Positions 22,750 through 37,166 of a stretch of DNA of 64,000 nucleotides are shown here, piece after piece. The translations under genes and the position numbers were made by a program. Source of the DNA: Orbicella franksi (Eukaryota). Each line of letters starts with the position of its first letter. The stretch's first letter is position 1. The notes under the pieces were generated by a model. That model ran no database searches and was not told the origin of the DNA. It was given only the letters and a program-made list of their open reading frames with translations. The DNA is taken from contig OZ116700.1 in the NCBI GenBank assembly GCA_964199315.1, forward strand, positions 10,974,001-11,038,000, given 5' to 3'.

Positions 22750-24602
22750 TTAGGTGGATACGTTATAATCCTCCATGCTGCTGTATTTAGCGAACCAGGC
22801 GTCTCGCTTGTTATGCGGGCATAGATCCCTGTAGAACTTCAGTCCAGTGACCTGGATGTACCCAACAAGGAGTTGGGAGTCACGGTCTTCCAGAACGAAA
22901 CCTACAATGCAATTTTGAAGGAATGCCTTAAAAAAATACTGAATTATACCTATATAGTCGGCTCATAATTGATCTCAATTTTCTGGGTGAAATTAGAAGG
23001 CTTTTACCGATTCTGGCATTTTTATGTTCCTAGCGGTGCTTGGGTTTTTTTTTTTTTGGTTTTTTTTTTGGTTTTTTCGGTCAGAAAGATGTTTGCATTG
23101 TTTTATTGATCTAACTTGATCTGAAACTGATATAATATTCTTGGCATTTCGTTTTCCTGTGTTCTTATATTTAACAAGCAAGGTACAAGCTGGTACATTA
23201 ACAGTGTCTTTATGTAATCAGAAAGGGTGTCTTCCTCTAACCTGGCTGACGCCATCTTGTTTTGACGAGAACCTGGACTGGGCACGGACCTAGAGAAACT
23301 TCCGGTAGGTCCCAGACTTCCTCAAAACTAAACGAAAACTTGAGGCTCGTAAAAAATTAGGCGTTCATTTCCTTTGAGTAGCAGGTTTGATACACATCGA
23401 TATGCAAAACATTTCACATTCCGCTAAAATATATGCACTAAAATTTGCAGTATAGACTATAATTAGCCTGCCCAACCCTACAATAGCAAACGCGGAGGTT
23501 AACTTCGGTCCAAGACGATTATTACACTCCACACTGCTTTACATGTTTTGCCGCTCAGTACACCGCAGCTAATCACGATGTTTCGATTTTTCCAAAGCAC
23601 AAATACTCTTACCTATCTTGTCGCTAATAATAACGACTGTAAACAACTAAAAATTGTTACAAATTCGAAGGCAAAACTGCCCTTCCTTTACAAGAGATAA
23701 ATGCCTTACTCAAAAGGAATTCTGTCAATTTGCTTTCTTATAACTTCTACGCGAGACGTAGAGATCTCGTCTTTTGAACTGACTTAAAAGGATACTTTAA
23801 CATGTCTGGAGTTGAACTAACCGTGTGTCTGTTCGTCGAGAACCAAACAGACATGGCATCCGTCATCGTCGCTTCTTGACTGCGGGCTGTTGGTGAGGTT
23901 GTACTGGCTCGCAAACCCGATTATGGCTTCTAGGGCTTCAAGGCGAGCCTCGGCGCTTCTTGCTGTTACACAATTCTTGACAGCAAAACCAACTCTTGGT
24001 TCCTTTGGATGGTAGAGAATAGCGGTGAACGGTGGAGACGGGATCGCCGAGGGACCAACTGTACTTGTCCTCGCCTCTGTTCTACGGTAATTTCTGACAG
24101 CTGCAACCTCTTTCTTGAAATACGTCTTGAAAGGATACTGTCGAACATTTTCCACGTAACTGCTGTGCGTGGCATCATCACACGCTCTCCATTCTTTGTT
24201 AACGTAATGTGCCAAGAACCAGTGTGGAGTTTTACGTTTCCTCCTATCATATATACGGAGATAGACTTCCACGTCTACACAGAGATGAGCATGAGTCTTC
24301 TTCTTGTCAGTTCCCCAGTTACCACAATGGAGAGACAGAATAGCCGACTGTTGCAGATCAGTATAGTAGGAGACCATCGCCATTGCCTCCTTGACTATCT
24401 TACGCTTTGCCCCTGGGGCTTTGGAGCCAGAACTATTGCGAGGCACAATGATGAAATGCGGTCGAGGAGTGTAGTAGTCAAAGACTACCTTGAATGTCTC
24501 GAATCTCTCACTTGCGGGCAAGAGATCAAACGGTTCCCTCTTTTTCTTTGGTCGTTTATGTTCATTTAAGTAAAAGGGCCTCTTTCCTCTGGATGCACAC
24601 AT
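22750..24602 (-). CDS. HIT-like domain protein, paralog A1 (2 exons, 310 aa)
   Basis: Exons 24602-23822 and 22901-22750 (phase 1; donor gttagt, acceptor ttgtag). Motifs FKVVFDYYTPRPHFIIVPR, LSLHCG, KTHAHLCV, GCHVCL; exon 2 encodes FVLEDRDSQLLVGYIQVTGLKFYRDLCPHNKRDAWFAKYSSMEDYNVST*. Confidence 0.85.
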
Positions 24603-24733
24603 GTTTTCAGAAACAAGGCAAGGAATGTGAAAGATAGGGTTAAATTAAAAGACTTGATGGTTATGATTACGAAACATTTCACTCGGTCTTCAAATCCAGT
24701 ATCTCGGTCCGCACCGTGATGGTCTTCCTAAGT

Positions 24734-24743
24734 CAACCAATCA
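24734..24743 (-). promoter_or_regulatory. Conserved CCAAT (NF-Y-like) box upstream of A1
   Basis: caaccaatca on + (ATTGG on the gene strand), 132 nt from the ATG; the same word is at the same distance in all four paralogs. Confidence 0.55.
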
Positions 24744-33488: not shown

Positions 33489-33498
33489 CAACCAATCA
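33489..33498 (-). promoter_or_regulatory. Conserved CCAAT box upstream of A2
   Basis: caaccaatca 133 nt from the ATG. Confidence 0.55.
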
Positions 33499-35129
33499 CA
33501 TAACTTCATTACGTCCAAGCGTCAAGGCAACGAATACACGTCAATCAAGTTTCCCTTCCTTATGAGTATACAATGTTTTCCCGGAAAAATCTGATTTCTA
33601 GGAATTATCCAAGGTATTTATAGACTTACCCGTGATTGGACACTGTCCCTGCTTTTCAATGAGCGTCACTGTCGAAATTAAGCTATACCAGCGCGCATGC
33701 TCTAAGCAAACATTGCAGAGCAACTTATTTTCCTGCTAATTCTGCAGTCAAACGCAGGAAGATGCATTTCGTCGTGTTTTGCCTCTGATCTCGTCAAAGT
33801 GAAAATGAGGGCTCATAGATTTGATGCTATTACCCCAGATACTACTTCAGTTTCTCTGATACAAGTTTCATACCATCACATGAATCATTCATTAACAAAC
33901 AGGTTTTCCTTTTCACCCATGACTCATAGTTTATTGATCTAAAATTTTTGGTCGGGTTTTTCAAGGCAACATAAGAGACAAAGCTTGCACAAATGGCTTT
34001 CAAGGGATTCCCTTGTGCATTGAAGCACCTCCTGAATGAATGAATGGCAACTTTATATAAGTCTCAGTCTTAATAGCTGAGCACAAGTGCTTTACTAATT
34101 GGGCAGACTAAAATATGCAACAGCAGCAGAAAGAACTAGCCCTTAAAATACAACTAATCCTACGCAAAATGTACTTGTGCGTTATTTTCGAAGTATTAGC
34201 GGTGATACAAACCTGACAGTTTTTCCTTCTATAGCAGGATTGAAAGCGATTCAGGCTATTGTACAGCACGGCATTATCCACAGTTAGACATTAAAATGTG
34301 TCTCTCACGTTTATACATGGATTGTTTACGACTGAGCTAGAGAGAGATAGGTCTGGAAGATGCCATAGGGAGATCTTTATAGCAGTGTGGTAGAAAATTT
34401 CAAGAGCGTAATTTTGAAAACTTTCTCTTTGATTTTTGCTAAATCAGGTGGCTACGTTAGAATTATAATTACAGCTGTTTCATATGAGATGGGAGTACAT
34501 TATACCAAGGTGTTAAATATAAATCCATTATCTACCACTAGAAACGTCGGACCATACCACCAGCAAAACATCTTACCTGCACGGGAGAAATGCTGTATTC
34601 CTGCGAAGATATTAACGGAATTTCATGCACATATGCACATATCTACCGCTGCATTTCCTTCCATCACTACATTCCTCATATCTACCTCGGGAAAGAGAGG
34701 TCGCTGATATTCAACCAAGAAAACTCCATCCAAAATTGGGGCGATGTCTTAATCATGAAATCTTGATGTACACATTTATTATCAATAATTCCATCACGGA
34801 ATCAGAGAAACTAAGCTCATGCGTGTACTTTACTATAAGTGCACTTTACATTTTTCATGTCTACATTGGGAGTCTTTAATCTGTTTTCAAAGACTCGTGT
34901 TTTCTTCATAGTGACTATAGTAACTGGTTTCCAAGTTATTCGGCTAGGTCCCTTTATTTTAGATTGTTTGTGAATTCAATCAGTGAAATCCTAAAAAGAA
35001 GGCTATCAAATGGTTAAACGCAAACTCAGATAATTACAACAGCTTCTTAGACTAAACTAGGCTAAACAAAACAAAGAACTATAACGAGTCTCTTAACGAT
35101 TAAACGTCTGAAGACCTAAGATGGAAGAT

Positions 35130-37166
35130 TCAGGTATACACTTTGTAATCCTCCATACTGCTAAATTTATCGAACCAGTCATCTCGTTTGTCATGTGGGC
35201 AGAGATCTCTGTAGAACTTCAGTCCAGTGATTTGAATATATCCAACTAGGAACTGAGAGTCTTCCTGAATGAAACCTGCAATGTTGAATTAAGTGCCATG
35301 AAGAAAAAAAAGCAGCGATTTATTCAGACTGTTTCGACAAAATATACTTATTCTAACACGGAAATTACGCAGGGATACGGGATCTCGAAGAAGAGTTCGC
35401 TACAAGAGTGTTTTAGTCTGAGTTAAGGTGATTCAACTGTTGATGGCCAATATGTCAGGAGATTTCCCGGTTCTACTTTGAAGCCAACATTAGAAGTTTG
35501 CAAAACGTTACTTTAGCTCAAGTCACGAACAGTCCAAAAGCCAGTTTTGTAAAGCTTTCTTTCTCTGCGTTCCAGTGGATTTGAGCCCACGTTGTTAAAG
35601 CTGCGTATTTTTGATCGCAAAGTTTGTTGAAAGCCAGAAAACAAGTAATTGAACGACTAAGAATTCCGCCCAAAACCGGAAAAGAGAAACAAAACTTAGA
35701 AAACAGAGGAATAGAGAGTTTGATTAAGATTCTATGTGTCACCGGTGTTCATGCAGTCGCCATGAGTTGAGTGACTAACGGAGAAACTTTCAAAAAACCT
35801 TGCATAGGAGTCGTCAGAAAAGTTATTCAGATACATACTCTTAAAACTTAACTTAGACGAGTCCAACAATCGTTTTCATGATGTTAGTCAAGGTAACGTT
35901 GAAAAATTGCTTTACTGTTCTGAACACAAACACTCTTACTGTGATTCCTATAGGAATCGATATGCTGGTATGATGACCGCCGAGAGCTAGGGAAGGCCCT
36001 GGCGATTGCTACAGTTGCCAGTTAAAAAGACGTACAAAATTTATCCTTATTCTATATTACCTTTTGTTTATCGGACATGATTCTTTACCTATCTTTAATC
36101 AGTGTTAATGGCGTGAATACTACGGCCGAAAACAATTAGAGTGGACAGTGAACTCGTGGACAGTCGCTCTCTCCTATCAAGAAAAACCGAAAAAAAGAAA
36201 TACCTCACTCGGTTGAACCAGTCTTGCTCCTGTTTCTACGTTAAACGTAAATATTCAGCATTTGAAACTGAAATTAAAAACTAGATAATGTTCAAGGCTT
36301 AAATAAACTTTTTAAAAGTTAAGTACTTAACAAGATTTGAACTAACCATGCGACTTTTCGTCGAGGACCAAACACACATGGCATCCATTGTCATCTCCCT
36401 TCACGCTCATGTCCGTCAGCTTGTTTTGACTTGCAAACTTGACTATGGCTTCTTGGGCTTCAAGGAAAGACTCGGCGCTTTTCGGTTTCGCGGATTTCTC
36501 GACAGCAAAGCCAACCCGTGGTTCTGATGGATGATAGAGAATAGCGGTGAACGGGGGAGACGGGGTAAATGTCGCTTCGGCTGTATTTGGCTTTGATCGA
36601 CGGTACTCTGTAACAGCTTCAACCTCTTCCTTGAAATACGTTCGGAGTGGATATTGTTGAACATTTATCGCGTAATTTCTAGGATCTTTGCTCGCCTTCC
36701 ATTGTTTAGTCACGTACTCTCGCGATGGCCAATTGGGAATTTCTCTCTTTTTACTCTCGTAAACACTGAGATACTCGTTCACGTCAGAACAAACATGAGC
36801 GTGGAACATGTTCTTTGTAGTTATCCAGGAGCCAAAATGGAGGGACAAAATAGCGTGGTTTTCAAGATGATAGTGAGACACCATAGCCATTGCTGTCTTT
36901 ACCACCTTCAGTCTTGCTCCTGGCTCCAGCGAGTTGTAATCAGTTCCAGGTTTAGACTTATCGCGAGGCAAAATGATAAAATGCGCTCGAGGAGTGTAGT
37001 AGTCGAAGGCCACTTTAAATGTGTCGCATTTCTCGTTGGGGGGCATCAAATCAAATGGTTTCTTTTCTTCTTGCCGTCGTTCGTGTTCATCTGAGCGAGG
37101 TCGCTTCCAGTGTCCTCGTTCACGTTCATCTGACCATGGGCGCTTCTTTGCTCTATAATCAGACAT
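35130..37166 (-). CDS. HIT-like domain protein, paralog B2 (2 exons, 321 aa)
   Basis: Exons 37166-36347 and 35275-35130. Motifs FKVAFDYYTPRAHFIILPR, LSLHFG, MFHAHVCS, GCHVCL; exon 2 encodes FIQEDSQFLVGYIQITGLKFYRDLCPHDKRDDWFDKFSSMEDYKVYT*. Confidence 0.87.

Follow-up and report, generated by a model that had tools for sequence, protein, structure and literature searches.

A probable new branch of the HIT superfamily in a tandem gene array of the coral Orbicella franksi

The histidine-triad (HIT) superfamily of nucleotide enzymes is small and well studied, and it includes medically important members such as GALT, FHIT, aprataxin, DcpS and HINT1. Its members share a mechanism in which a covalent nucleotidyl-histidine intermediate is formed on a substrate of the type NMP-X (NMP, nucleoside monophosphate), followed by hydrolysis or transfer. 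The superfamily is usually listed as five classes, HINT, FHIT, GalT, DcpS and aprataxin (PMC6354057). A stretch of 64,000 nucleotides (nt) from the stony coral Orbicella franksi (assembly GCA_964199315.1, contig OZ116700.1, positions 10,974,001 to 11,038,000 of the forward strand), termed the window below, contains a tandem array of four genes whose products belong to the HIT superfamily, but to none of its described families. The reading favored here, with somewhat better than even confidence, is that they form a transcribed new branch of the superfamily and probably encode a nucleotidyl-histidine enzyme with a built-in second lobe.

Membership in the superfamily is supported both by the predicted alpha+beta HIT fold of the nucleotide-binding domain and by kinship at the sequence level. 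A model made with AlphaFold2 from an alignment of 58 sequences (predicted local distance difference test score, pLDDT, 88.7; predicted template modeling score, pTM, 0.87) was compared with 48,161 chains using VIA-align, and the first 29 rows were all members of the HIT superfamily. The Z scores were 7.7 for the DUF4931 protein 4qvu, 7.1 for the GalT-like protein 1z84, 6.9 for the uridylyltransferase 6k5z, 6.6 for CDP-diacylglycerol pyrophosphatase (Cdh, 2pof), 6.5 for GalT (1gup), 6.0 for HINT2, 5.9 for Apa2, 4.8–6.0 for CWF19-type subunits, 5.1 for aprataxin and 4.2–4.6 for DcpS. The 101-residue HIT protein 4zgl matched the N-terminal lobe (N-lobe) with a Z score of 6.4 and a root-mean-square deviation of 2.5 Å over 86 aligned residues. 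Foldseek searches of the PDB, AFDB clusters and Swiss-Prot, together with a search of the ESM atlas, were likewise dominated by HIT families, in agreement with VIA-align. At the sequence level, an N-lobe profile of 55 sequences was compared by hhalign with 36 canonical HIT domains (PF01230), which came partly from bacterial genomes and partly from the FHIT and HINT3 genes of the coral itself. The match had a probability of 81.5%, a P value of 1.1e-5 and a score of 33.6, while 20 column-shuffled controls and one reversed control scored at most 16.2. Fold searches and profile comparison thus agree with a preliminary description of this DNA, made from the letters alone, which had recognized a HIT-like domain in the N-terminal ~110 residues.

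No described HIT family matches these proteins at the sequence level, and their separation from HINT, FHIT, aprataxin, DcpS, GalT and CWF19L, which had been proposed at the outset, is upheld. Pfam hmmscan found nothing above the cut-off in the four window proteins or in 58 divergent family members, and profiles of Cdh and GalT also failed to connect with the family. A few members have weak matches to Pfam models of the HIT clan (DcpS_C at 5.5e-4 in 2 of 58, HIT at 0.023, GalP_UDP_tr_C at 0.08), and family profiles searched against PDB sequences gave only non-significant matches, such as HINT2 with an E value of 1.3–2.2. The protein is also unnamed, as had been stated. A word-indexed search returned 74 close relatives, every one unnamed or “uncharacterized”, an exhaustive HMMER search of 1.84 billion representatives returned 96 relatives, and no paper on LOC110059540 (the Orbicella faveolata counterpart, see below) or on the family was found in the literature. 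At least some of the relatives have already been annotated automatically as “HIT domain-containing”, so the fold assignment by itself is no surprise.

By whole-chain structure, the model is closest to the two-lobed HIT enzymes, none of which is supported at the sequence level. Cdh dominates the matches among reviewed proteins, while DUF4931 and GalT-like proteins dominate those in the PDB. The GalT branch, compared here through GalT (1gup/1hxq), ADP-glucose phosphorylase (1z84), the uridylyltransferase 6k5z, DUF4931 (4qvu), Apa2 (4i5t) and GDP-D-glucose phosphorylase, provides the best whole-chain structural matches, with Z scores of 5.9–7.7. Its members also consist of one chain in which the motif-bearing lobe comes first and a degenerate second lobe follows, and the third histidine of the motif is replaced, by Gln in GalT and, in one register, by Cys in the new family. 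The new family differs from GalT in being shorter and in lacking the N-terminal Cys-x-x-Cys zinc motif and HxHxQ. Among the 58 members there is no match to PF01087, and PF02744 is matched by one, with an E value of 0.08. A GalT profile of 7 sequences gave an hhalign probability of 32%, but paired the N-lobe with the C-terminal half of GalT and was uninformative.

The other described families resemble the new proteins in more limited ways. HINT and FHIT (PF01230) have the same fold as the N-lobe and share the blocks “xHFIILPx” and “G...HxH” with it. The new family fails the Pfam cut-off, however, and carries HxHxC, with two of the three histidines, while the Asn of HINT corresponds to His110. 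HINT and FHIT are homodimers of subunits of ~120–150 residues, whereas the new family has a single chain of ~320 residues with an extra lobe and an insert. Cdh (PF02611) is about as large, also has two lobes with a HIT-like fold, and its H-x-H likewise precedes a Cys, but it is a bacterial, membrane-anchored protein, while the new proteins are eukaryotic and begin with a charged segment. Aprataxin, DcpS (PF11969) and CWF19 match at the level of the fold (aprataxin with a Foldseek E value of 8e-3 and a Z score of 5.1) and have a nuclear-type basic N-terminus, but the new family lacks the full triad and has no match to them past the cut-off. Apart from the two weak DcpS_C matches, Pfam found no FHA domain, C2H2 finger, DcpS N-terminal domain, metallophosphoesterase or CwfJ_C_1/2 domain in the 58 members, and a length of ~320 residues leaves no room for such accessory domains.

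Counted over the 58 members, the conserved residues of the N-lobe are F54-D55, R60, H62, S108-x-H110-x-G112-x-W114 and the strand F-H122-x-H124-x-C126. G112 and H124 are found in all 58 sequences; D55, S108 and H110 in 57; F54, R60, H62 and H122 in 56; W114 in 53; and C126 in 52, while position 120 is variable. The catalytic strand carries two histidines only instead of the HxHxHxx triad. Where the hhalign alignment is confident, the His of “xHxLVIPK”, a HINT block, is matched by H62 of “PRxHFIILP”. In the hhalign register, H122 and H124 correspond to His-2 and His-3, but with low posterior confidence, and the motif is left unaligned at a stricter threshold. In the non-significant HMMER alignment to HINT2, H122 and H124 correspond to His-1 and His-2, with C126 at the position of His-3. 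The spacing from the conserved Gly is 12 or 14 residues, depending on the register, compared to 13 in HINT and FHIT. The second register, in which His-1 and His-2 are kept and Cys takes the place of His-3, appears slightly favored, because H124 is invariant and because GalT (HxHxQ) and Cdh (HxHxS-C) also lack the third histidine. Under either register, the alignments retain an alternating His pair on the catalytic strand, as the preliminary description had noted. Its more specific proposal, that the first His was lost and the second is the nucleophile, agrees with the hhalign register at low confidence, while the HINT2 alignment and the pattern of conservation fit replacement of His-3 by Cys better.

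The protein is ~310–320 residues long and has three parts, which in the fourth gene of the array (c4) are an N-lobe HIT-like domain (~44–146), an aromatic-rich helical insert (~147–200) and a second alpha+beta lobe (C-lobe, from ~200). The ~110-residue HIT segment described earlier is thus borne out as the N-lobe, but the account has to be extended by the second lobe and the helical insert, as in GalT and Cdh enzymes. The C-lobe (residues ~200–321) is made of two strand pairs and three helices, and contains the motifs HP-x-EP-x-x-GF and G261-C262-H263-x-C265 as well as a tail encoded by the second exon, GY-x-x...FY...P...W...F...T. C265 is conserved in 58 of 58 members and H263 in 55, and G-C-H-x-C echoes the HxHxC of the N-lobe. 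When the profiles of the two lobes are compared by hhalign (P 4.5e-4), H124 pairs with H263 and C126 with C265, which suggests an internal duplication as in GalT. A single-chain pseudo-dimer is a plausible interpretation of the model. In addition, the N-terminus of the B-type and c1 proteins (gene types are given below) is basic and resembles a nuclear localization signal (NLS).

All four paralogues are on the minus strand, arranged head to tail from position 22750 to position 37166 of the window. Each consists of two coding exons separated by one phase-1 GT-AG intron with the donor GTTAGT and an acceptor ending in GCAG or GTAG. In all four, exon 1 ends in ...H-G and contributes only the first base of the Gly codon, and exon 2 encodes a conserved tail of 47–49 residues with Thr last (...GYIQVTGLKFY...NVST in c1). 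The features are as follows:

22600-40300: two tandem two-gene (A+B) units with a period of ~8.8 kb, 22.6–31.2 kb compared with 31.4–40.3 kb
22750-22901, minus strand: c1 coding exon 2 with stop, placed by tblastn with P0038, P0008 and P0027 and by the acceptor AG and frame
23822-24602, minus strand: c1 coding exon 1, A-type, intact, motif KTHAHLC, ATG at 24602-24600, placed by open reading frame (ORF) and alignment
26300-26445, minus strand: c2 exon 2 with stop
27513-28287, minus strand: c2 exon 1, B-type pseudogene, motif MFHAHVC
31519-31664, minus strand: c3 coding exon 2 with stop, placed by the spliced RNA joint and tblastn; the 3′ untranslated region (UTR) continues below 31519
32567-33356, minus strand: c3 coding exon 1, A-type, intact, motif KFHVHLC; RNA contigs cover 32566-33470
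34346-35275, minus strand: c4 exon 2, coding at 35130-35275, followed by ~790 nt of 3′ UTR
36347-37166, minus strand: c4 coding exon 1 as annotated, B-type, motif MFHAHVC, ATG at 37166
37319-37446, minus strand: c4 5′ exon, with its 3′ end at 37319; 37446 is not a mapped upstream limit

The order of the array is therefore A-B(pseudogene)-A-B. Exon 1 of c4 is 100% identical to P0038, the uncharacterized protein LOC110059540 isoform X1 of Orbicella faveolata. Compared with c4, c2 has 89.5% amino acid identity and a synonymous divergence (dS) of 0.17, and it is a pseudogene, because its frame is interrupted by stops at 27895-27897 and 27763-27765, 15 residues of the N-terminal part are deleted and conserved positions are substituted. 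When the family profile was searched against all six frames of the entire 497-Mb genome, only these four loci were found. The coordinates, gene count and two-exon structure given in the preliminary description are all correct, its quoted motifs (KTHAHLC, KFHVHLC, MFHAHVC, FDYYxPRxHFII and LSLHxG) all occur in the paralogues, and the local expansion with one pseudogene that it reported is confirmed.

Spliced RNA shows that at least part of the array is transcribed. In RNA contigs from runs X6 (polyA) and X1, which come from separate studies, position 31664 is joined exactly to 32567 in c3, and 35275 to 36347 in c4. The skipped introns measure 902 nt and 1071 nt, and are bounded by GT..AG when read on the minus strand (CT..AC on the plus strand). 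One X6 contig (record 10) covers 34346-35272 joined to 36344-36536, and this joint is present in X1 too. RNA is the sole possible source of such an intron-free joined form. Moreover, c3 exon 1 is present in 9 RNA runs, and all sampled words of c1 exon 1 were found in 14 RNA runs from more than 10 studies.

In runs X6 and X1, c4 transcripts also carry an extra 5′ exon ending at 37319 and spliced onto 37152, as seen from loose contig ends at 37154 in both runs that match 37321-37350. The intron at 37153-37318 takes out the annotated ATG at 37166, and the 5′ exon contains an in-frame TAG, so that the first in-frame AUG of the spliced isoform is Met40, just ahead of the conserved domain. Translation of this isoform would start at Met40, and the basic, NLS-like N-terminus would be lost. 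Since this 39-residue N-terminus is kept in other corals, both the ATG-retaining and the 5′-exon-spliced forms may be present. The sequence of the c4 5′ exon is duplicated upstream of the pseudogene c2, at ~28443.

The general HIT mechanism is the most likely one for the family, judging from the fold and the conserved residues. A ribonucleoside-5′-phosphoryl substrate (NMP-X) would bind to the N-lobe, and H124 or H122 would attack the alpha-phosphate to form a covalent nucleotidyl-histidine intermediate. X would then depart, and the nucleotide would pass to water (in a hydrolase) or to phosphate or another acceptor (in a transferase or phosphorylase). As in GalT and Cdh, the C-lobe would probably take the part of a built-in “second subunit”, and a structural metal may be bound by its Cys/His motif. 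A basic N-terminus, found in B-type proteins and in c1, gives a hint that the substrate is nuclear, either a nucleic acid or a nucleotide. A more specific form of this proposal, held tentatively at somewhat less than an even chance, is that the proteins constitute a further active HIT class, in which a single-chain pseudo-dimer with HxHxC and a Cys/His second lobe, repeatedly tandem-amplified and confined to a patchy set of eukaryotes (stony corals, an annelid, a brachiopod, bdelloid rotifers and AT-rich protist-like genomes), acts on a substrate outside the known classes. Examples would be a nuclear nucleotidylated nucleic-acid end or a signaling nucleotide.

Several observations weigh against an active new branch. 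The structural scores are moderate (Z scores below 8, Foldseek E values of ~1e-3 to 1e-2 and TM scores of 0.3–0.6), and Z scores of 7–8 in VIA-align are possible without kinship; the weight of the structural case, itself based on a model, is carried by the uniformity of the HIT-only list and not by individual scores. The C-lobe alone (pLDDT 91) matches HIT rows with Z scores of only 3.5–4.2, tied with ACT, nitroreductase and S6-like folds in VIA-align and Foldseek. The triad is incomplete, and its register is ambiguous between the hhalign and HMMER alignments, so that the nucleophile may be either H124 or H122. Finally, the deep raw polyA runs X23 and X24 yielded 1–2 reads in a 12% sample, which means that expression is not constitutive everywhere and not uniform.

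The incomplete HxHxC triad would also be expected of a non-catalytic HIT-like scaffold that binds nucleotide, nucleic acid or a partner protein, as CWF19-type spliceosome factors have been proposed to do with their HIT-like C-terminal domains. The basic, NLS-like N-terminus would suit such a role, as would the whole-chain VIA-align matches to CWF19-type subunits of intron-lariat spliceosomes (Z scores: 8ro1_L1, 6.0; 9l5r_U, 5.0; 3jb9_c, 5.0; 6id0_U, 4.8). These rows, however, score lower than the enzymatic two-lobed HIT rows, no CwfJ model is matched in Pfam, and the His pair, the upstream His and the Ser/His/Gly positions are invariant or nearly so over 58 very divergent members, which is the signature of a retained active site. 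A scaffold is therefore unlikely. Less likely still is a eukaryotic counterpart of Cdh, that is, a pyrophosphatase that releases NMP from nucleoside-diphosphate-lipids or -alcohols. Of the 30 top rows among Swiss-Prot entries of AFDB, 24 are whole-chain matches to Cdh proteins (best E value 1.6e-3, probability 0.99), row 2 of the atlas search is also Cdh, 2pof aligns over residues 32–321, the core is of similar size (~250 residues), and the Cdh motif “...SLAxNS..R.QNQLHIHISC” resembles “LSLHxGSW.....FHAHxC”. The TM scores are only 0.3–0.38, though, PF02611 is not matched, and Cdh sequences begin with a hydrophobic anchor while the coral proteins begin with a charged basic segment. Kinship at the sequence level was considered and rejected, as the P value of 4e-4 obtained with 2 Cdh sequences became 0.08 (hhalign probability 0.7%) with a profile of 117.

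The history of the array bears on another proposal of the preliminary description, compatible with any of these biochemical readings, namely that the genes are a “new system” in the form of a defense or environment-response family undergoing birth-and-death evolution, its loops near the active site being variable. Tandem arrays that include a broken copy do recur: besides the window, another coral (contig L063:5998-17588) carries a B-type copy, an A-type copy and a third copy in fragments, while three tandem copies with 32–35% identity to c4 lie in a distant species (L065:7296-14558). Loop 68–77 is variable in length, expression ranges from strong in some metatranscriptomes to near zero in the two polyA runs, and exon 1 of c1 and c3 (79–81% identity) has diverged beyond the adjoining intron (89–91%). 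The genome contains only four copies, however, and pairwise ratios of replacement to synonymous change (dN/dS) among the paralogues are 0.29–0.42, with no excess of replacement changes, so the paralogues evolve under purifying selection. The copies are also long-lived. In a tree of 73 coral-type homologues and 4 outgroup sequences, the B clade contains c2 and c4 together with Oculina, the c3 clade includes Montipora (85% identity to c3), and c1 falls in a separate sister clade with its own members from other assemblies; dS is 0.17 between c2 and c4, 0.40 between c1 and c3, and 0.8–1.0 between A and B. By these comparisons, A, B, c1-type and c3-type are old coding types with orthologues in other coral genera. 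Searches of PADLOC and PHROGs gave no match. With few copies, purifying selection, ancient paralogues and no match to a defense family, a defense role has no positive evidence yet, and the birth-and-death proposal is quite unlikely, although a conditional or environment-linked role is left open by the recurrent tandem duplication with copy decay and the uneven expression.

Repeat families spaced 8742–8881 nt apart underlie the ~8.8-kb period of the array. When one unit is compared with the other in sliding windows, identity is 94–98% around c2 and c4 and 79–91% around c1 and c3. Later homogenization by gene conversion, with the coding types kept apart, may be the best explanation for the closely similar non-coding flanks.

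The named relatives come from the stony corals Orbicella, Montipora and Oculina, the annelid Capitella teleta, the brachiopod Lingula anatina and bdelloid rotifers of the genus Rotaria. The remotest relatives lie on AT-rich contigs with fragmented, intron-bearing eukaryotic genes, not on viral contigs. A search of a viral structure library did not demonstrate a viral relative, and gave a single weak row, a Terrestrivirus HIT-domain protein with an E value of 7e-4 and a TM score of 0.19. Canonical HIT genes with full HxHxH triads are present in the same coral genome (C12:7588424-7588705 and C5:17752857-17753144), and five exon-sized canonical HIT matches lie on C1 and C2 as well. The canonical set includes an FHIT-like single-exon ORF (...VEHVHVHVLPR...) and a HINT3-like ORF (...IQHLHLHVIAPR...). 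The new family is therefore an addition to the standard HIT set and not a replacement.

A sixth HIT lineage that is conserved, transcribed and subject to purifying selection, has an altered triad and lacks a Pfam model would extend the catalogue of the superfamily, and a family with HxHxC would offer a testable case of how far the triad tolerates replacement of a histidine. Coral genes labeled “uncharacterized” would be placed in a likely biochemical class, that of nucleotide hydrolases or transferases, and coral expression studies would have clean gene models to draw on. Until a substrate is found, the family is of moderate practical value.

The surroundings of the array contain several other coding sequences. 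Directly downstream, on the minus strand at 17235-18017, a 260-residue frame has a sub-threshold Pfam match to Nucleoside_tran (ENT-type; E 7e-5, 166 residues), and this exon is perhaps joined by 20059-20781. A functional link to a nucleoside transporter was considered and set aside, as none was found within 10 kb of the array in coral contig L063. Upstream, a 937-residue ORF on the plus strand (46965-49778) combines an integrase core (rve, E 6e-11) with an OTU-like cysteine protease (E 3e-6) and belongs to a transposon, and a reverse-transcriptase ORF (RVT_1, E 5e-31) lies on the plus strand at 55201-56670. Farther upstream, a 622-residue ORF on the minus strand (59630-61498) contains a Fanconi anaemia group E (FANCE) domain with an E value of 4e-17.

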